Sequence record: NC_048747.1
Length of the DNA stretch: 64,000 nucleotides
Reading direction: 5' to 3' (one strand)
Shown here: positions 1,632-40,360 of the stretch, in pieces
Layout: each line of letters starts with the position of its first letter
How positions within the stretch are numbered: position 1 is the stretch's first letter
Position numbers and translations under genes: made by a program
Notes under the pieces: generated by a model
What the model was told of the DNA's origin: nothing
Databases searched by the model: none
Seen by the model: only the letters and a program-made list of their open reading frames with translations

Positions 1632-3059
1632 TTAAAGGCGCTTCATCATGCGCTTCATTAGTGGTGACATCTCTTTACGAGACTGTTTAAGCTTCACGCC
1701 TTTGATGGTCGCTTCGATAGGGTTTATGGGACTCTCGAATGTCATTCTTGTTTCCCAGTTAGGTAGGATCAGATCTTTATTGACCAACATGTTGGTGATC
1801 TCTTTAACCAACATGTTGTTCGATAGAGCAGTTCCTTCACCATCTAGGTGTGGGAAGTGAATCGTGCAATTTACAAACAATTTAGATTCTGAGTAATCTT
1901 CTTTGTCTGCACGCTCGCAATTTATTGCTGATGACACACCCAGTGAATGTGAAACTAGAGTGTCACCTTTGTTTAGGTAGTTAATGAAGATCGAGGGTTG
2001 CACGGATTTAGGACCAAGGTAAGTTTTAGGTGCACTTAATGTATAAGGTCTCCCGTAAGCACCAAAGGTCGAGTTAGTCAACATGGACTTTGCACGTTTC
2101 AGTATAGCTAATTTGCTTTCGTCCGTCTCGTCTTTAATTGGATGCTGAAAGACTGCAACAGCTTGGTTAATGACCAGACGAACTTTATTAGTGAATATCT
2201 GCAACATTAAAATGTCGTCCGGTTCCAGTATGTGAAGAAACTCTTCCACATCACACTTAGTACTCCCCACGTAACACTCTAGATTTTCAGCCAACTCACG
2301 AAGTTGATTGACTCGCTCCTCAGTCATGAATCCTTCCACGATACGAGTAGAGAACTCGATGTGAGGTCGATAGATCGTTTGTCGTGACAGGTACTGTGAG
2401 TCACCATCACGTTGTAAGTTCATTCTTCGCATAGAAAAATCCGGCTTAGATTCATCGATATCTTTTATGGTCTCTAACCACAAAGATTTTAAACAAACGA
2501 ATGCATCCGACCGCATGTGAGGATTTAGTTTAGGTCGTTTTTCACCATCCAGCAATGAGATGTTAATACGCCCACCAAACGCTTCCACCATGAAACTATC
2601 TTCCACTTCTATTTGTTCAGAAATGGTGATTAAGTCTGTTTCATGATTACCTTGATAGAAACGGATCTCCTTTGGTTTTAATTGAGTTTTCAAGTTATCT
2701 ATCAAACCAGTAGGGTCACCTACGATAGCGTAGTTGCAACGACCTAAGCATTTGACCAACTCCATCGTGACCGAATCTTCTTTTAAATTTACTCGGAGTA
2801 AGTCTCCCGGCATCCCCATTTCTTTTAGCACTTCGCGTGTGGTAGGACGACCATCGATGAGACAATAAATGTTCTCAGGATTTTTATCTTTGATGAAGGG
2901 CTGGAGGTCGATAGGAGTGGTAAGTCGAACTTCTCCTTGACCTTCTGGACAAGGCTTGTAAACCGTCTCCACTAGGGATTTTAAATTTTCATGTTGGTTT
3001 TCTTCAAAAAGACCTAACATTGCGCTTTTACGTGATTGGTATTCGTTATTATCAGACAT
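1632..3059 (-). CDS. Hypothetical protein (475 aa), probably early-expressed
   Basis: Long ORF, AGGA RBS, promoter motif at 3111-3130; no family recognised. Confidence 0.85.
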   Translation of the reverse strand: MSDNNEYQSRKSAMLGLFEENQHENLKSLVETVYKPCPEGQGEVRLTTPIDLQPFIKDKNPENIYCLIDGRPTTREVLKEMGMPGDLLRVNLKEDSVTMELVKCLGRCNYAIVGDPTGLIDNLKTQLKPKEIRFYQGNHETDLITISEQIEVEDSFMVEAFGGRINISLLDGEKRPKLNPHMRSDAFVCLKSLWLETIKDIDESKPDFSMRRMNLQRDGDSQYLSRQTIYRPHIEFSTRIVEGFMTEERVNQLRELAENLECYVGSTKCDVEEFLHILEPDDILMLQIFTNKVRLVINQAVAVFQHPIKDETDESKLAILKRAKSMLTNSTFGAYGRPYTLSAPKTYLGPKSVQPSIFINYLNKGDTLVSHSLGVSSAINCERADKEDYSESKLFVNCTIHFPHLDGEGTALSNNMLVKEITNMLVNKDLILPNWETRMTFESPINPIEATIKGVKLKQSRKEMSPLMKRMMKRL

Positions 3060-3110
3060 GATTTGGTTCCTATTAAGGTTAATGAAAGTGAAACTGTTCT
3101 TAGCTTCATG

Positions 3111-3130
3111 TAGGTGATATAGATTTGAAA
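3111..3130 (-). promoter_or_regulatory. Putative early (virion RNAP) promoter
   Basis: TTTCAAATCTATATCACCTA; one of seven copies of the motif, each upstream of a minus-strand gene. Confidence 0.65.
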
Positions 3131-3147
3131 AAATCTAAATGCAAAGG

Positions 3148-3178
3148 TAACTACGGTGGACTAAGTCCACCGTAGTTA
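3148..3178 (-). terminator. Terminator hairpin ending the structural operon
   Basis: Perfect 14-bp inverted repeat taactacggtggac/gtccaccgtagtta at the 3179 stop. Confidence 0.8.
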
Positions 3179-4510
3179 TTAAACGTATTGTTCTTCCAGA
3201 CCCATAAACAGAGTTAAGTTTACGTTGCAATAAAACATGTACTGAGGAGACGCATCTTTAGGTACGTAATCGAATGCCATTCCAATGACGGTTCCTGTAC
3301 GTTGTTTCACTAAACCTTCCGATGTTAAGTAGTAATAACGGAAAGGCATGCCGGGACGCACCAAACGAGGGTCCGCGTTCTTCCAAGGAATGGTGAGGAT
3401 TTCACCATTGTTCACTCGAGACTTAGATAACTCACGAGCGACGTTATTAGTGGGAACGGGATTAACGTTAATGCGTTCTTCTCCAGACTTACGCTCTACG
3501 GTACGGTATTGGGTTAACGAGTCTTGACGTGTCAATAAGACTTGTCCTTTCTCATAGTGACTACCTACCATGCCGTTAGCGGCTTTACTCGAGATGATCT
3601 GTTGACCAGTGCCTTTGTTCTGAAGTTGTATATCGACTGAGTTACGTAACTCACCACGTCCACTGGAAACGATACTTAAGTTAGTGTCGTTTAAATAGTA
3701 CGAAGCTTCAATGGTCGGCATGACATCTTCAGGCACACGGATAATATCCAACGTATAGTCACTGCGGTCATATTTTACAGTGTCCCATAACGTGTAGACA
3801 CGCCACTCTCCTTTAGCATAGTACGAACCCACCCCTCGAGAGTAAACCCCGTAGTCAGTCTCTTGCAAGAACTGTACGACGTTGATTAAGTTAGTCTTAC
3901 CTTGAGGGAAAGTAATTTGTCGGTAAACCACCGTGTTGTCCACAGGCTCTTCTATAAAGACACCTTTGAATTTATCTTGACCACTTAACTCAAGGTCGAT
4001 GGTTTCCGAACTTAACGCATAGTGGATGACGTCTTTTACATTCGCAGACAAAAACACATCGGAGTAAGGAATGGTCCGTAGTTTAGAAAACCCTAAGTCC
4101 ATTAGCTGGAAGTCTAAGCTAATGAAGTTTTGATCATCGTAAAGGCTGAGGTCCATTTCCTTAGTTGTATTGCCCAAGGACTCCGTATCATTTACTGACA
4201 ACGGAATGCAACGATAATAGCGAACTTCAGAACCAGCATCAGTAGTCGTGATGAGTTCAAATTGCAAATCGTCTTTGTAGGGCAATACCTCACGCTGATA
4301 AACACCGGGTTGAATACGAACTCTTACCCGAATGTCATCACTCCTTGCTCCAACGTAATTAGCTAAACCTGTAATGCGTTCCACACCAATAATGCTCACG
4401 TAACCTTCCGGGAGCACAAACATCCCTTCCAACTCATAAACGATCGGTGCAGGTTTGGTTGCGTTGAGCTGAGCTTGCTCCATGAGGTTACTGAGTTCTA
4501 AAGGTATCAT
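3179..4510 (-). CDS. Virion structural protein, phiKZ gp101-like (possible baseplate hub)
   Basis: 443 aa; last gene of the block after the head-protein array; assignment by synteny and size. Confidence 0.5.
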   Translation of the reverse strand: MIPLELSNLMEQAQLNATKPAPIVYELEGMFVLPEGYVSIIGVERITGLANYVGARSDDIRVRVRIQPGVYQREVLPYKDDLQFELITTTDAGSEVRYYRCIPLSVNDTESLGNTTKEMDLSLYDDQNFISLDFQLMDLGFSKLRTIPYSDVFLSANVKDVIHYALSSETIDLELSGQDKFKGVFIEEPVDNTVVYRQITFPQGKTNLINVVQFLQETDYGVYSRGVGSYYAKGEWRVYTLWDTVKYDRSDYTLDIIRVPEDVMPTIEASYYLNDTNLSIVSSGRGELRNSVDIQLQNKGTGQQIISSKAANGMVGSHYEKGQVLLTRQDSLTQYRTVERKSGEERINVNPVPTNNVARELSKSRVNNGEILTIPWKNADPRLVRPGMPFRYYYLTSEGLVKQRTGTVIGMAFDYVPKDASPQYMFYCNVNLTLFMGLEEQYV

Positions 4511-5223: not shown

Positions 5224-6502
5224 ATACGCGTTTAGACGTCATGATCGCTGAGACCAATATACCCGCTCGGTAGATTTGATCTTTCGGCGTCCATGTGTTA
5301 TACGCTTCACAGAATTTTAAAATCTTTTCTCGATCGACAGTTCGATCACCAAAGAACTCCTTACACCATTGTTCAAACTCACCTTTGTACCCTCCGTTGT
5401 AAAACTCTTCGGAGAAATAGTTAGGGACTTTGGTACCTTCTTCCATAGGAGGACGTGGAGCAAACCCGTTGTCTCTTGAAATATAAAGAGAGTTAAGTTC
5501 ATTGAACTCCAGTTTACTCGGGAGTAAGATGTAGTCAAACTTGGTGGCAAGGAAACCAGTGTAACCTCGAGATGACATCATTGAGGTTCGGTTGTACTTG
5601 TAGAGTTCTTTACTTACCATTGGTAAGAAGTCAAACGAACCTTGAATAAAACAATCCCAAATAGTGAGTTCTTTATCGTAATTGAAATTACGACCCACCT
5701 TAAAGTTAAGCGATTCAATCGGAGAAGCACCCGGGATGTATTTGTGGGGAATAACACGTTGTAGGTAACGTACCAAGAAGGCGTCGTAGTAATACAACTT
5801 ATCATCTTCCACAATAGCGATCGTACGCTCTGGGTTCCAATAATGATTCGTCAACAAATGTTGCGAGATCATGTAAGCCCAACGATCTAGCTTCTGGTTT
5901 AACTGACGGTTTTCTTCAGTGATGATCGCTTGACCACCCTTAAGTGCCGACTCTGCTGAGAACCATGAAGTTTCCACCACCTTACTGCGGATGTTTGCTT
6001 CGATCGTTTCATTCATCTCCGCCAACAAAGTACACTCACACATGTAAACTTTGTCTTTAGCGATTGACATAGGTTCTGGGGTTTTGGTGAGCTGAATTAG
6101 ACCAGCACGCCCGTCGCCAATATCTTGAACAAAGATGTCCGCTTTCAAAGGTTGTAGATCAAAAACGAAGTGCCCTACCCAAGTTTGGTTAACTTCGTAA
6201 CGTTCTTCATTCCAGTTACGAGAAGGGTCACCATCCCGTTTGTAGACCAGATTCTTGATCTCGGTGTACGACTGGTACGTTGCAATATCGTTTAACTGTA
6301 AACCAACGACTTCTTCGTCTTGCCCTAAGTACTGACGGTAGTAATCACAACGAATAGGTTGACCGCTAACGTTGTGTAACAGACTGGTGTGTGGAATGTA
6401 CTCAGAATCTACAATAGAGTGACGGTACTCTTTGGCGTAGACCGTAGGTTTATTTAAATCCGGTTTATCATTGATACCCGGAGCTTGTTCTAAAAAGGAC
6501 AT
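5213..6502 (-). CDS. Virion structural protein (possible neck/head-tail connector)
   Basis: 429 aa in the phiKZ gp98-100 position; function inferred from synteny. Confidence 0.5.
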   Translation of the reverse strand: MSFLEQAPGINDKPDLNKPTVYAKEYRHSIVDSEYIPHTSLLHNVSGQPIRCDYYRQYLGQDEEVVGLQLNDIATYQSYTEIKNLVYKRDGDPSRNWNEERYEVNQTWVGHFVFDLQPLKADIFVQDIGDGRAGLIQLTKTPEPMSIAKDKVYMCECTLLAEMNETIEANIRSKVVETSWFSAESALKGGQAIITEENRQLNQKLDRWAYMISQHLLTNHYWNPERTIAIVEDDKLYYYDAFLVRYLQRVIPHKYIPGASPIESLNFKVGRNFNYDKELTIWDCFIQGSFDFLPMVSKELYKYNRTSMMSSRGYTGFLATKFDYILLPSKLEFNELNSLYISRDNGFAPRPPMEEGTKVPNYFSEEFYNGGYKGEFEQWCKEFFGDRTVDREKILKFCEAYNTWTPKDQIYRAGILVSAIMTSKRVFGG

Positions 6503-31186: not shown

Positions 31187-31214
31187 TTAACTGTATGTTA
31201 AAAAATAACTAAAT

Positions 31215-31246
31215 AAACTCCATCACCCGTTAAGGTGATGGAGTTT
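31215..31246 (-). terminator. Intrinsic terminator
   Basis: 13-bp stem aaactccatcacc/ggtgatggagttt with a U-rich tail on the mRNA. Confidence 0.8.
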
Positions 31247-31264
31247 AACTTACTGACGTTGTTA

Positions 31265-31825
31265 TTAGCTGTACGTGCGGCTGAAGTAGTTCTGTAGGTT
31301 TTGCGCTACCTTAGGGTGATAACCTTTGGTTAGCATTACAATGTCTACTTGACGGCCCACGCGATGACGATCTTTTAAGTTACGACCTAACGTAACAATG
31401 GCAGAAAGTAAAGCCATGTGTTTTTGCAAGTACTGTTCTTTCTTAGCACGCTTCACTTCCGGATGCTGAGTGTGAACAAACAGACGGTCCATAGCAAAGG
31501 CTTTAGGTTCACGACGAACAGAGTTGACCATGTAATCCATTACCGTAGTAAAGATTGCGTAGTCTTCTTTAAGCGTGTCGTCTAAAGCTTGCATGAAGTT
31601 AAGTTGTTCTTCACCGTACTTCTCAGAAGGCACGTTGCGACGACCTGCAAGTAAAGTGATAAACTTATCTACTTTCTCTAGCAAGATTTTAGCACCCGGT
31701 TCTTCGATAGCTTTAAACTTCTCTGATTCCGTTGCTTTAGGAAGTTCTTCTTCCACGGCTGTAACTTCTTTTGTTTCGACTTGCTCGAATACTTGTTCTT
31801 CTACTGGGGGTGTATACTTACCCAT
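31265..31825 (-). CDS. Conserved hypothetical protein (186 aa)
   Basis: ORF track; GAGG RBS. Confidence 0.75.
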   Translation of the reverse strand: MGKYTPPVEEQVFEQVETKEVTAVEEELPKATESEKFKAIEEPGAKILLEKVDKFITLLAGRRNVPSEKYGEEQLNFMQALDDTLKEDYAIFTTVMDYMVNSVRREPKAFAMDRLFVHTQHPEVKRAKKEQYLQKHMALLSAIVTLGRNLKDRHRVGRQVDIVMLTKGYHPKVAQNLQNYFSRTYS

Positions 31826-31907: not shown

Positions 31908-32348
31908 TTACCCGCTGGATAGATCTACTCGACTGAGTTCAGCCAGTTGTTGTTCCAGATCGTGCTGCTCTCCGGATTTAGGTTGAGAGTTGTTTTGTCG
32001 CTGTCTGAGTTGGTTTAACTCTTCAGCGCCTTTTCTCATCCCTTTGACAATCTCTGAAGCTACTTTAGGGGACATATTCAAATACGTATTAAGGTCACCA
32101 AAGATTTCCTTTAGTTCGTAAAACGCATAAGTTCTAGCTCTAGACTGAATTGACCACGGATGTTCAAAGTCATAACTGTCGTCATAGAGTTTAATGTCAT
32201 CCCCAGGTTCTGGACAATTCTCCAACTGACCGTAACCTGCACGGTACAACATCAGTGCTATGGTTTGATGTTGTACCTCACCTATACCTGAGGGATCAAT
32301 ATTAGAGATTCTCTCACGGTATACGTGGTACAGGTTATCGGTTAACAC
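31908..32348 (-). CDS. Putative tail/baseplate assembly chaperone, downstream part; likely reached by -1 frameshift
   Basis: GTG start without an evident SD; frame open upstream to 32444, past the slippery site; ELKEIFGDLNTYLNMSPK resembles T-type chaperone tails. Confidence 0.55.
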   Translation of the reverse strand: MLTDNLYHVYRERISNIDPSGIGEVQHQTIALMLYRAGYGQLENCPEPGDDIKLYDDSYDFEHPWSIQSRARTYAFYELKEIFGDLNTYLNMSPKVASEIVKGMRKGAEELNQLRQRQNNSQPKSGEQHDLEQQLAELSRVDLSSG

Positions 32349-32356
32349 CCCTGGTA

Positions 32357-33982
32357 TTAAAGGGTGTCTGGTGCGATTATCCCGCGGTTCACCGCTCGGA
32401 CGGAAATCGTTTGGCGGGTCAGGATGAAAAAACTCATGAATGGGTCAATAGGAGTAATCCCATGTGAAGTGTGACCACCGTGAGTATCTTTACCACACTT
32501 AGGACACACCGAGTTACTCATACCCACTACAGTTGAACTCATCTCAGGACCGTGTTCCACACACCAATGGATCAGCTTACGGGTTACGTCGTCTGACTCA
32601 TCAATGATAGGTAGTAAGCCGTTAAAGAAACCGACTGGGTCTTCACGTCGAGTAAAGACTTCTGGTTCTTCATCCGAACCTGCTTCAGGGAAGATGGTGA
32701 GTTTAGAACACCAGTGCATGTACTCTAGACCACGAACCGTGTCAATCAATACCGTGAGTTTCTTTTCGTACTCTTGGTCGTTCATGGTATCCGTACGGAT
32801 ATCACGTAGTGTAGGTTGGATGTAATCCATAAACACGTCAAACGCACAGAAGTATTCACTCAGTGACGGTTGGGCAAACTCTAGGCGGTGTGTATCGTCG
32901 TGGAAGTCAATGTGATCTTTCTCCACAAACTTAGATTGATCTTGTAACGCCAGTACTTCTTCAAAAGTGTGCTTAACGGCAAAGTTCTTCAGACTACCTA
33001 ACGCTGCGGCCTGTTCATCACTAAGCAACGTCTTATCATGCCAGAGCATGGTAACAGGATCCGCCTTAACGTAATCTACCCAGTCACAACCATTCTGGTT
33101 ACAGTAAAGTTGGATCGGCAATCCGTCTTCTGCTAGCTCCGCCATCATATCAACAAACAGTGCTCGGATGTCAGACAGTTTTATTAGACGAGCTAAGTCG
33201 CGTGGATCATCAACATCAGAGACTGAATGACTGGTGATTTTCTCACTGATGTAATTCCAGAACACACGGTAAATAGAAGCACGAATCAGAGTCATGGAGT
33301 TACCATTGAAGCTAGAAACGTAACCGTGAATCTCTTTGTTGATTTTGTCGATCACCTGACCTAACTCAATAATAGAGCTAGGTTCTAAACGAACTTGAAT
33401 GAACGAGTCACGCATAAGTACGTCGTAACCATTTGGAGTACGACTCTTACGCTGAGAACTACGCTGCATGCGTTCCGCCAATGCAGTGGCTTCATTCTTA
33501 GCACCTGGGTAACGTGGAACAATATCCCCTTCTTCTTTACCGTCAGCAAAGACAGATAGGTTTTCCCATGGGCGGTCTTTCAGCATTGGGTTGCGGAAGT
33601 AAGACAACTCTACTAGGTTACGATGGAAGCTCAAGAAATTAGACATCATTACTTCTAATTCTTCTTCCGTTTTACCTGGGTGTTGTTCCTTAGCTAATTC
33701 TTCGTATTGTTTCTTATAACGAGTGATCTCAGCTTTGGTCGCTTTGCCTTCTGACAACGCTGACTGGTAACGAGCCCAAGATAACGCTAAACGCATAGTA
33801 GGTTCGAAGTTAGCTTTACTTGTACCTAGTAGGATGTTGAAAATTGCACTGCCTTCTTCAAGCTCCGCTGTATTTGGAAGAGCCGGATTAACCGACTCCT
33901 TCATCGTGGTGTTCTCTGGTGTGTGTTTTTCACGCAAAGAAGGGCGTTTAATTTCTTTTGACTCTTCAGTCATCTTATTCAC
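32357..33982 (-). CDS. Putative baseplate hub/tail assembly chaperone with Cys pairs
   Basis: CNQNGC and CPKCG motifs; PIDPFMSFF near the C-terminus, reminiscent of T4 gp26/gp51-type proteins. Confidence 0.55.
   Translation of the reverse strand: MNKMTEESKEIKRPSLREKHTPENTTMKESVNPALPNTAELEEGSAIFNILLGTSKANFEPTMRLALSWARYQSALSEGKATKAEITRYKKQYEELAKEQHPGKTEEELEVMMSNFLSFHRNLVELSYFRNPMLKDRPWENLSVFADGKEEGDIVPRYPGAKNEATALAERMQRSSQRKSRTPNGYDVLMRDSFIQVRLEPSSIIELGQVIDKINKEIHGYVSSFNGNSMTLIRASIYRVFWNYISEKITSHSVSDVDDPRDLARLIKLSDIRALFVDMMAELAEDGLPIQLYCNQNGCDWVDYVKADPVTMLWHDKTLLSDEQAAALGSLKNFAVKHTFEEVLALQDQSKFVEKDHIDFHDDTHRLEFAQPSLSEYFCAFDVFMDYIQPTLRDIRTDTMNDQEYEKKLTVLIDTVRGLEYMHWCSKLTIFPEAGSDEEPEVFTRREDPVGFFNGLLPIIDESDDVTRKLIHWCVEHGPEMSSTVVGMSNSVCPKCGKDTHGGHTSHGITPIDPFMSFFILTRQTISVRAVNRGIIAPDTL
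32426..32432 (-). other. Candidate -1 programmed ribosomal frameshift site U_UUU_UUC
   Basis: mRNA AUG AGU UUU UUC; the -1 frame continues without a stop into ORF 31908..32348. Confidence 0.65.
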
Positions 33983-34739
33983 CTTTTACTTTCACTAGTT
34001 CTCCTACACGCTCCAAGTGGATTTCACGAGAAACGTCGTAGAGGTTACTTTTACCTAAGATTTCACCAACGAACTTGATGTCGTCGTTAATAAGCTCGGT
34101 GTGTGGTTCAGCTAACTCGATTAACGGTGTGATGATTTCTTCACTGTCTTCTTGGTAGCTCAACAGCGTAGGGATTAAACGCTCACCTAAGACTTCGTTA
34201 TCCAGAATTGCTTGGTGTTGTTTCTCTTCATCGAGTCCACGGATGCTTTCGAAAGCATCCAGTACCGCAGTTGCGTTATTGATGTATTTCAATACCGCTG
34301 CATCTAACGCGTCCATCTTAGCGGTAAGCGCTTCAGTCAACACAAGTTTTTCTTGTTCTACCAAAGAGTGTAAGGTTGCTACCAGTGCGTGCGGACGGAT
34401 GTAGTGGTTTAGACCTTCACAAAGCAGGTTAGTCATGCCATCTAGGTCCAGTGGTGTAACTGTGTTACCTTCTTTCTCAAAAGACTTCATAGCGTCTTTC
34501 TGCAACTGGCGGGGCAATGTACTGAACACTTTCCAGAATTTCTCTTTTGCTTCTTTCTTCATCTCATCACTCATAGCGTGTTCGCCACCGAGTGTGTCAT
34601 TGAGTTCTTGAAGTAGCATTTGGTCTTTTAATAAGCGTCTTTCTTGAGCGTCTTTTAAACGCTGCTTGCTTTTAGACGCCTGCACATTACGTTGACGCTG
34701 TTTACGTTTTGCCTGTTTATGTTTGCTAATTTTTGGCAT
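33975..34739 (-). CDS. Hypothetical protein with very basic N-terminus
   Basis: MPKISKHKQAKRKQRQRN...; helical acidic body. Confidence 0.75.
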   Translation of the reverse strand: MPKISKHKQAKRKQRQRNVQASKSKQRLKDAQERRLLKDQMLLQELNDTLGGEHAMSDEMKKEAKEKFWKVFSTLPRQLQKDAMKSFEKEGNTVTPLDLDGMTNLLCEGLNHYIRPHALVATLHSLVEQEKLVLTEALTAKMDALDAAVLKYINNATAVLDAFESIRGLDEEKQHQAILDNEVLGERLIPTLLSYQEDSEEIITPLIELAEPHTELINDDIKFVGEILGKSNLYDVSREIHLERVGELVKVKGE

Positions 34740-38827: not shown

Positions 38828-40360
38828 CTAAGTAATGTGGTGGAAGGAATTAATGTTGCGGTGAGATTTAGATTTCACAGCAAATAGTTGTTTGCGTTTT
38901 TGGTGGTACTCTTTCTGTTTAGGAATCGAGCTACACACAAAGTACACAAATTTAGGACTATCACCCGGGTAGTTCTTCAACGGTCGCGTACGACCTAACA
39001 TCTGGTCGTTGCGTTGTCTAGATGAACAAGCGTATGGACTGAATGCTACCGCCAAGTCTGGGATGTCTTTACCGGTACCACAAGACTGAGGTGTGGTAAA
39101 GACGACTTGGTGTTCCATGTAGGACATTTCCGTCTCTTTGTTCTTAGACTCCGTATTAGTGAACTTCCAGATATCCATATCCGGATACGCTTCCTCAAAG
39201 TCCTCTTTCATCCGAGTTGCCATTTCCACGGTACTGAAGAACCACAGACACTTCTGACCTTCCTTATGGTCATTCACGTAGAATTCTTCAAAAGCTTGTT
39301 TACACAAGTCTAGGTACTGGGAATACAACTTAGGTGATTTGAGTATGGCTTGTTCATACTTAACATGAGAGTAACCGCCAAACCCTTTGGTGTTGATACG
39401 GTATTTCTGCATGTCGATATAGTGATGGTACGCTACTACATCGATGAACTTTTTATACTCAGGTTCTTTGAGTCGCATTGCAGGTGGATAAACGTAACGA
39501 TAGATGTCGTTAACGAATGGATCATCAGCCTTTAATGTAGCAGAGAGTGCAATGGTTTTCTCAAAGTTACCAAACAACATGGACATGTAAACACGATAGA
39601 TATCTTCGTGTGCTTCATCCATGATACGAAGACCAATCTCCATGTCTGAGAAAACGTCATCTAGACACGGAATGTCTTCTTCACGCTCACGCTTGAGGTA
39701 GGTATCGTAACGAGTTAACGGGAGTATAATAATCTTTGGATCAGCTTTACCTTCTTTAATAGTCTCGGCAGCTTCCTCAATCTTACCATTCCCCACCAAC
39801 ATGATATCCTCGGGGTCCAACTCCACCGACTGACCTAACGACTCAAACCAGATAGACACGTAACGAGGCAAACACGTAATGAGTGTTCGCTTATTCGTGT
39901 TCACCATGGTGTGGGTCGCCATAAAGGTCTTCCCGTCGCCTGTCTGGGCGTTGTTAACCTTTACTGGACCATCGGCTAGTTGATACTCACACCAGTCTTC
40001 CTGATGCGGTCTAGGAGCTCCCCATCCCTCTTTCCATTTAAACTCAACGTCTTTCCCTTTAATAACCGGTTCGTCTTTTATCTTGACACGAGATTGCTTG
40101 TAACCGACCCCTTCCATAAACTGAATGAAGTCATCAAGTAAACCCGCGGAGATGCGAAACTCACTACGGTCATTATTCAAACGAGCAAAAGAATGAGTAA
40201 CTACGGTACGTTTTTGTCGGGTCCCCGGAATGGGAACCTGACCTAAACGGTATAAGCGCCGACGACAAAACGGCATAATGACGTCTTGAACAAACGGCGC
40301 TTTGTAGTCTGTTATTCTTAGGTAAGTCCCGCCCTTCCACACGGTCACAGTAGAGCGCAT
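38828..40360 (-). CDS. Superfamily 2 helicase (phiKZ gp75-like)
   Basis: Walker A NAQTGDGKT, DEAH, motif III SAT, motif VI QMLGRTRP. Confidence 0.9.
   Translation of the reverse strand: MRSTVTVWKGGTYLRITDYKAPFVQDVIMPFCRRRLYRLGQVPIPGTRQKRTVVTHSFARLNNDRSEFRISAGLLDDFIQFMEGVGYKQSRVKIKDEPVIKGKDVEFKWKEGWGAPRPHQEDWCEYQLADGPVKVNNAQTGDGKTFMATHTMVNTNKRTLITCLPRYVSIWFESLGQSVELDPEDIMLVGNGKIEEAAETIKEGKADPKIIILPLTRYDTYLKREREEDIPCLDDVFSDMEIGLRIMDEAHEDIYRVYMSMLFGNFEKTIALSATLKADDPFVNDIYRYVYPPAMRLKEPEYKKFIDVVAYHHYIDMQKYRINTKGFGGYSHVKYEQAILKSPKLYSQYLDLCKQAFEEFYVNDHKEGQKCLWFFSTVEMATRMKEDFEEAYPDMDIWKFTNTESKNKETEMSYMEHQVVFTTPQSCGTGKDIPDLAVAFSPYACSSRQRNDQMLGRTRPLKNYPGDSPKFVYFVCSSIPKQKEYHQKRKQLFAVKSKSHRNINSFHHIT

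Follow-up and report, generated by a model that had tools for sequence, protein, structure and literature searches.

A -1 frameshift is reportedly conserved in the tail assembly chaperone genes of long-tailed phages. In lambda G/GT and P2 E/E+E' the shift occurs near the 3' end of the upstream open reading frame (ORF), the long form, a minor product, shares its N-terminal part with the short one, and the arrangement is kept across very divergent phages; lambda G/GT needs no stimulatory RNA structure and works at a few per cent. Escherichia coli dnaX (tau/gamma) and the IS3-family orfA-orfB pair are bacterial -1 shifts on heptamers of the form X_XXY_YYZ that set the ratio of two products, and the frameshift site of phage T7 gene 10A/10B is reported to be G_GUU_UUC. 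Here I describe two neighbouring ORFs, ORF-A and ORF-B, in the final 64 kilobases (kb) of the record of Vibrio phage 2 TSL-2019 (NC_048747; Gorgonvirinae, Aphroditevirus), a jumbo phage of 242 kb to which the studied region is 100% identical; the whole 64,000-nucleotide (nt) stretch is called the window below. ORF-A and ORF-B are probably joined, with odds that I put at roughly three in four, by a programmed -1 ribosomal frameshift at a run of U.

The layout of the locus is that of G/GT and E/E+E', with a proposed -1 shift late in the upstream ORF, a minor long form that would share the N-terminal part, and conservation across very divergent phages. However, the upstream protein of G/GT has ~140 amino acids (aa) against ~540 aa for ORF-A, G/GT adjoins the tail tube and tape measure genes whereas ORF-A does not and has no family match, the slip site of G/GT is G_GGA_AAG rather than a U-run, and ORF-A is possibly expressed early. 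T7 10A/10B resembles the model proposed for the locus in that a large phage ORF gains a C-terminal extension through a -1 shift at a U-rich Phe site close to its end, and the non-canonical sites of two metagenomic relatives (GTT TTT, then A) resemble the T7 site, but the T7 product is a capsid protein, its extension is short, and the shift is not family-wide in the same sense. In dnaX and IS3 the heptamer is A_AAA_AAG, accompanied by an upstream Shine-Dalgarno (SD)-like element and a downstream hairpin or pseudoknot, none of which was found at the ORF-A site; the dnaX shift moreover shortens its product, whereas that of ORF-A would lengthen it. Finally, the T4 baseplate hub assembly proteins gp26 and gp51 (PF12322) have a weak predicted-fold likeness to ORF-A, seen through the names of its BFVD matches. 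These proteins are 200-285 aa long, and T4 gene 26 makes two nested products by internal initiation, not by frameshift as is proposed for ORF-A.

The closest relatives of ORF-A itself are hypothetical proteins. ORF-A is identified by sequence as the orthologue of phiKZ gp77, PhiPA3 gp074, 201phi2-1 gp136 and EL gp47, because notes in the records link these four proteins and tblastn matches agree (126 records with ORF-A as query, 246 with PhiPA3 gp074). In the list of Prichard et al. (2023) the gene is core gene cg18, a "hypothetical protein" not unique to chimallin-encoding phages, and ORF-B is not among the core genes. The orthologues of this Chimalliviridae core gene, which also include Goslar gp081 and RAY gp267, share with ORF-A its sequence, length, four Cys residues and synteny beside homologues of gp78, gp79 and gp80. 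Throughout this family the proteins are annotated as hypothetical, and the -1 extension is either left uncalled or given as a small gene of its own.

The slip site and the proposed recoding

Coordinates of all features are collected in Table 1; adding 178,446 to a window coordinate gives the record coordinate. Near the end of ORF-A the codons AGT TTT TTC place T_TTT_TTC in X_XXY_YYZ phase, as checked by hand and by script, which confirms the canonical U_UUU_UUC heptamer reported in a first-pass annotation of this DNA. The heptamer stands 23 codons before the ORF-A stop (TAA, 32359-32357). The same annotation had described the -1 frame as shut by a TGA just upstream of the heptamer and then open into a 146-aa ORF, and this description was correct, the open stretch amounting to 172 codons. 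As a check against chance, a crude gene set of the window (~21,000 codons) was scanned for in-frame X_XXY_YYZ heptamers. There are 60, the open -1 stretch after them has a median length of 6.5 codons (95th percentile 31), and the heptamer of ORF-A is the only one followed by more than 60 open codons. The arrangement of the slip site is not a chance pattern.

Under programmed frameshifting, most ribosomes on ORF-A would read past U_UUU_UUC and stop 23 codons on, giving a short form of ~538-541 aa that ends in a C-terminal helix. Some would slip back by 1 nt on the U-run, with tRNA-Phe re-pairing with UUU in the -1 frame, and go on for 172 codons to yield a long form of ~688-691 aa, presumably the minor product, in which a Pro-rich linker and the helical domain of ORF-B take the place of the terminal helix. 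The first-pass annotation had given the two products as 541 and 691 aa, lengths that are right for a GTG start of ORF-A. The slip itself, its efficiency and a need for the two isoforms in a set ratio are what I infer from the arrangement.

The start of ORF-A accounts for the small range in these lengths. The mechanical list of ORFs opens it at GTG 33982, and RefSeq opens it three codons later at ATG 33973 (region 33971-33982, minus strand), for a protein of 538 aa. ATG 33973 lies 1 nt past the TAA of the upstream gene, gp189, as is typical of a coupled start, and a short form of 538 aa is for this reason more likely than one of 541 aa.

Conservation across relatives

I compared 32 distinct loci, comprising 27 named phages from at least 17 genera and five metagenomic contigs; the sample was widened via annotated phage records and contigs encoding homologues, and the five contigs were picked because their ORF-A is without the Phe-Phe that the slip site encodes in the window. 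The named loci belong to Aphroditevirus, Tidunavirus, Miamivirus, Elvirus, Risingsunvirus, Petsuvirus, Miltoncavirus, Serwervirus, Phikzvirus, Seoulvirus, Wellingtonvirus, Moabitevirus, Goslarvirus, Chiangmaivirus, Agricanvirus, PCH45, Centimanus, Xoo-sp14, JM-2012, sm033 and Yong MS32. In most loci the identity of the protein to the window's ORF-A drops to ~20-35%.

Such a comparison of orthologous loci in Chimalliviridae had been suggested in the first-pass annotation as a check on its proposal that a programmed -1 shift fuses ORF-A to ORF-B, and the 32 loci give that proposal strong comparative support. In every one of them ORF-A is followed by an ORF in its -1 frame, and this frame is already open ahead of the U-run. 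Between 9 and 45 codons separate the site from the ORF-A stop, so insertions and deletions have occurred there without loss of the -1 relation. A canonical in-phase heptamer is found in 28 of the 32 (T_TTT_TTY in 26, T_TTT_TTG in one and G_GGT_TTT in one), and an in-phase U_UUU is found in all. The remaining four sites, in PhiPA3 and three contigs, retain a zero-frame TTT codon preceded by T, so that re-pairing of tRNA-Phe in the -1 frame would still be possible. Closer to the window, five genomes with ~73-87% identity to it over the aligned stretch show no variation in ~33 nt around the heptamer.

A full HMMER scan of 1.84 billion representatives extends the picture to 166 homologues of ORF-A (255-663 aa), 150 of them listed as representatives at 50% identity. 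Phe-Phe occurs 7-51 residues from the C-terminus (median 17) in 134 of these 150, and none of the 150 is an in-frame fusion of ORF-A with ORF-B. Because no fusion is seen among them, a stop soon after the site and a continuation in the -1 frame both seem to be required everywhere, which is the pattern expected when two products are needed.

Two EL-like records are irregular at this gene. In PQ287644 (HHBS8_1) and PQ516283 (vB_PQ1) the ORF-A homologue matches in two pieces, with three matching places overall in vB_PQ1, and it is annotated as two or three proteins. Eight other EL-like genomes are without such splitting, and the two cases are apparent disruptions or assembly problems.

Codon choice at the site and transcriptional slippage

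The codons at the site are constrained beyond what the protein needs. The first slip codon is TTT in all 31 loci counted, and the mean share of TTT among the Phe codons of the same genes is 0.32. In 30 of 32 loci T is also the last base of the preceding codon, against a background share of 0.42, and this codon encodes nine different amino acids across the loci. By contrast, the last base of the heptamer is free: of the 30 sites that begin with five T, 14 have T there, 15 have C and one has G. A free last position beside fixed T at the positions that a ribosomal slip requires is the asymmetry predicted by X_XXY_YYZ, and is not predicted by a mechanism that depends on run length only.

This asymmetry bears on the main rival to a ribosomal slip, which is transcriptional slippage: the phage RNA polymerase would add one U on the T-run in some of the mRNAs, and the same two proteins would result. 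Every locus but one does have a homopolymer of 5-8 T at the site, the searches for a stimulatory RNA structure next to it gave nothing, and these phages transcribe with multisubunit RNA polymerases of their own. However, most runs are short (5 T in two loci, 6 in 13, 7 in 12 and 8 in four), and known sites of transcriptional slippage usually have runs of at least 7-9 nt. Selection on run length should moreover favour T at every position, whereas the heptamer ends in C as often as in T and the fixed T are those that the ribosome requires; one locus even has G_GGT_TTT. On this evidence I regard slippage by the polymerase as improbable and continue to favour a ribosomal shift.

ORF-B as a probable extension of ORF-A

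A second alternative does without recoding altogether. ORF-A and ORF-B would be two independent overlapping genes, with ORF-B initiated alone or by re-initiation at GTG 32348 or at a later start. This GTG is only 9 nt past the TAA of ORF-A, ORF-B is annotated separately in most genomes, with a ribosome-binding site (RBS) in Miami and Moabite, and 4-nt or other short overlaps are common in phage operons.

The starts available to ORF-B nevertheless argue otherwise. The first-pass annotation had noted that the 146-aa ORF is headed by a GTG with no evident SD sequence, and the purine run found there directly adjoins the codon; with no spacer between them the GTG has no usable SD. In PDCC-1, which is 87% identical, the equivalent codon reads GTC, and ORF-B is annotated 32 codons shorter. 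Nor are start positions conserved more widely: across the 23 named loci examined for starts, the first ATG in the -1 frame lies 24-123 codons past the site, at no fixed position, and in 21 of the 23 the interval from the upstream -1 stop to the site is free of start codons. In Pseudomonas phage PA02, which is phiKZ-like, the first start of any kind comes 85 codons past the site.

Furthermore, the start-less stretch has the signature of coding in the -1 frame. Between the ORF-A stop and -1 codon 57, eight Gorgonvirinae vary at 33 of 34 third positions of the -1 frame, while first (18 of 33) and second positions (16 of 34) vary less often; ahead of the site they show a like contrast in the zero frame, varying at 40 of 47 third positions against 18 and 14 at the other two. 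Since the variation is concentrated at -1 third positions, the sequence ahead of the first ATG evolves as coding sequence of that frame. A tblastn search with the -1 piece matches the Miami group from the first residue at ~29% identity, and this match overlaps with the end of that of ORF-A. The -1 pieces from 23 phages can be aligned over their length, with Pro as the second -1 codon in most, then a variable linker and a conserved helical domain. On the frameshift model ORF-B would thus be mainly a C-terminal extension of ORF-A and not a gene with its own start. Two independent genes would also leave unexplained both the -1 relation in 32 of 32 loci and the fixation of a rare TTT with a preceding T at one spot, and I consider this alternative quite improbable.

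A reading in which one gene is broken in this record, whether by faulty sequencing or assembly of the homopolymer or by a recent frameshift there that inactivated it, is for practical purposes already refuted: homopolymer runs are error-prone, but the same frame relation recurs in 32 independently sequenced genomes and contigs, no listed homologue is fused in frame, and the zero-frame tail past the site is conserved and predicted to be a helix.

The annotation of ORF-B in relatives is uneven. ORF-B is called from an internal ATG in PDCC-1 (position 5849 of its locus) and phiKT1019 (position 5825), 32 codons shorter than in the window, and these calls drop residues that are conserved among eight Gorgonvirinae. 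In Miami (positions 3151-3162 of its locus) and Moabite (positions 3432-3442) an RBS and start are annotated for ORF-B 38-52 codons past the slip site. PA02 (positions 3048-3563 of its locus) has a -1 continuation of 165 codons that is unannotated apart from a 45-aa remnant called at its end, so the ORF-B domain of phiKZ-type phages is missing from protein databases.

Search for a stimulatory element and points against a ribosomal shift

Several observations weigh against a programmed ribosomal frameshift. No stimulatory element was recognized at the site, although such an element is not an obligatory feature of programmed -1 sites. The first-pass annotation had noted a GC-rich spacer with CCCGC/GCGGG complementarity, and a role for such a pairing was not borne out: in the window, the 97 nt that start at the heptamer fold with a z-score of -1.64 against shuffles, RNAalifold finds no pair shared among eight close relatives, and one relative has changes in the 3' arm. 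Across 28 loci the mean fold z-score is -0.24, compared with -0.47 in control windows, so no unusually stable structure was found downstream. Reading the sequences of the window and its relatives by eye revealed no upstream SD-like element, and Rfam has no match at the site. Because neither an RNA structure, an SD-like element nor an Rfam match was found, the efficiency of the frameshift may be low.

The comparative evidence has its own weaknesses, in that four of the 32 sites are non-canonical and the loci share descent, so the counts are not fully independent. No proteomic or ribosome-profiling report of a trans-frame product of this gene was found in the literature. Finally, free ORF-B may also be made in some lineages, besides the long form, because it has a plausible start of its own in some relatives (the RBS in Miami; in the window, the GTG 9 nt past the stop).

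A more specific version of the frameshift model takes the missing stimulator at face value. Recoding would be family-wide and need no RNA stimulator, a factor specific to these phages would set its rate, and the ratio of short to long cg18 product would act as a switch in timing or assembly. Candidates for setting the rate would be the nascent Phe-Phe peptide, the conserved codons just past the site or phage proteins bound to host ribosomes, and the ratio would then shift during infection by nucleus-forming phages. I regard this elaboration as doubtful.

The ORF-A protein and the comparison with tail chaperones

The protein carries two pairs of Cys, judged from 52 homologues. The first (CxxxxC; C294 and C299, 33086..33103, minus strand) is invariant; in the second (CxxC; 32495..32506, minus strand) C493 is invariant and C496 is conserved in at least 90%. 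The pairs are ~195 residues apart, the second lies 22 residues ahead of Phe-Phe, and together they likely form a putative four-Cys metal site. An AlphaFold (AF2) model of ORF-A is confident, with a predicted local distance difference test score (pLDDT) of 91 and a predicted template modelling score (pTM) of 0.90, and in it Phe-Phe stands at the start of the last helix (514-540). A ribosome that slips at this point would therefore make a long form in which the helix is exchanged for the linker and ORF-B. The model of ORF-B is helical but of low confidence (pLDDT 54).

Searches for a known family or fold returned little. Profile searches of ORF-A and ORF-B against Pfam, PHROGs, NCBIfam and PDB gave no meaningful match, and a PDB fold search with the ORF-A model found no neighbour. 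Foldseek with ORF-A against BFVD recovered orthologues and weak matches named as T4-like baseplate hub assembly protein or chaperone (expectation value, E, ~3e-3; probability 1.0; template modelling score by target 0.41-0.48). This likeness to T4 baseplate-hub assembly proteins in predicted structure is the sole link to tails, and may be taken as a weak lead, not as membership. Ranks 13-17 of the BFVD search are proteins without names, 389-974 aa long, that come from other myoviruses and match the ORF-A fold with E of 1e-11 to 1e-6; this agrees with the core-gene table, where cg18 is not marked as unique to chimallin-encoding phages.

Whatever the mechanism by which the two products arise, they could be a chaperone pair for tail or baseplate assembly, analogous to G/GT. 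The proposed layout is the same, a long form being added to a short one by a -1 shift close to the 3' end; the weak BFVD matches bear such names, and some records of homologues read "baseplate protein" or "baseplate hub". Furthermore, the 201phi2-1 record carries a mass-spectrometry note on the neighbours gp138 and gp139 and none on gp136 and gp135. The remaining evidence points the other way. PHROGs, NCBIfam and the PDB fold search give nothing of the kind, and the gene lies among replication and transcription genes. An ORF-A homologue is among the early-expressed proteins found by proteomics in the Churi paper, which is a poor fit to a tail chaperone. A chaperone role by analogy is thus unlikely.

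Membership in named families was considered separately and rejected. The first-pass annotation had called the pair a G/GT-type tail chaperone, and this part of it does not stand: ORF-A, at 541 aa against ~100-150, is four times the size of G, the gene is not between tail tube and tape measure, and no tail-chaperone family is matched. Sequence membership in PF12322 (T4 gp26/gp51) fails as well, as only two of 52 members match, with a best E of 0.073, below noise.

Genomic context

ORF-A and ORF-B sit in a block of genes on the minus strand (Table 1). The probable operon consists of gp189, ORF-A, ORF-B and gp186, with a terminator-like hairpin after gp186 marking its end; no hairpin of this kind occurs in the interval between ORF-A and ORF-B. 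The wider neighbourhood encodes RNA polymerase (RNAP beta subunit), DNA polymerase, a helicase and hypothetical proteins, and the synteny is the same in relatives. One nearby annotation conflicts with itself: gp196 (38828-40360, minus strand; record 217274-218806) has the product "DNA helicase" and the note "Phage terminase, large subunit @ intein-containing".

Table 1. Features of the ORF-A/ORF-B locus in window coordinates.
Feature	Position	Strand	Remarks
Slippery heptamer T_TTT_TTC	32426..32432	-	X_XXY_YYZ phase; on conserved Phe-Phe (residues 518-519), start of ORF-A's last helix
TGA closing the -1 frame	32445..32447	-	4 codons upstream of heptamer; no start codon between TGA and heptamer
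-1 frame reading past the heptamer	31908..32426	-	172 codons + stop; 26-codon start-less extension + annotated ORF-B
Dual-coding overlap	32357..32425	-	23 zero-frame codons (predicted C-terminal helix of the short form); in the -1 frame, Pro-rich linker
ORF-A (gp188, HWC03_gp188)	32357..33982	-	zero frame; 541 aa from GTG 33982
ORF-B (gp187) as annotated	31908..32348	-	146 aa from GTG 32348; PHROG 24181
gp189, upstream gene	33975..34739	-	same operon; 254 aa; phiKZ gp78 position
gp186, downstream gene	31265..31825	-	same strand block; 186 aa; syntenic in most relatives
Terminator-like hairpin 3' of gp186	31214..31247	-	15-base-pair stem, then T-rich tail

Implications for nucleus-forming phages

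A literature search, with subscription-only papers outside its coverage, found no frameshift described in phiKZ-like or chimallivirus phages and met gp77 only in lists, in agreement with the first-pass annotation, which took the feature to be undescribed in phiKZ-like phages. Read as a programmed shift, the ORF-A/ORF-B pair is a new case of a known mechanism, the phage -1 frameshift. If this reading is true, the locus would add a phage frameshift of deep conservation that belongs to neither the tail-chaperone nor the transposase class and apparently works without an RNA stimulator, which would make it a useful natural case for recoding on bare U-runs.

The consequences would extend through the family, since cg18 is one of roughly 70 core genes common to nucleus-forming jumbo phages. 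Every genome of the family would be mis-annotated at this point, with ORF-B given arbitrary starts or, as in the phiKZ-like record, left uncalled, and proteomic searches against annotated proteins could not detect the long form. The locus can be tested directly with existing data. If the shift is real, genetic and structural work on the homologues of phiKZ gp77 would have to reckon with two isoforms of this core protein.

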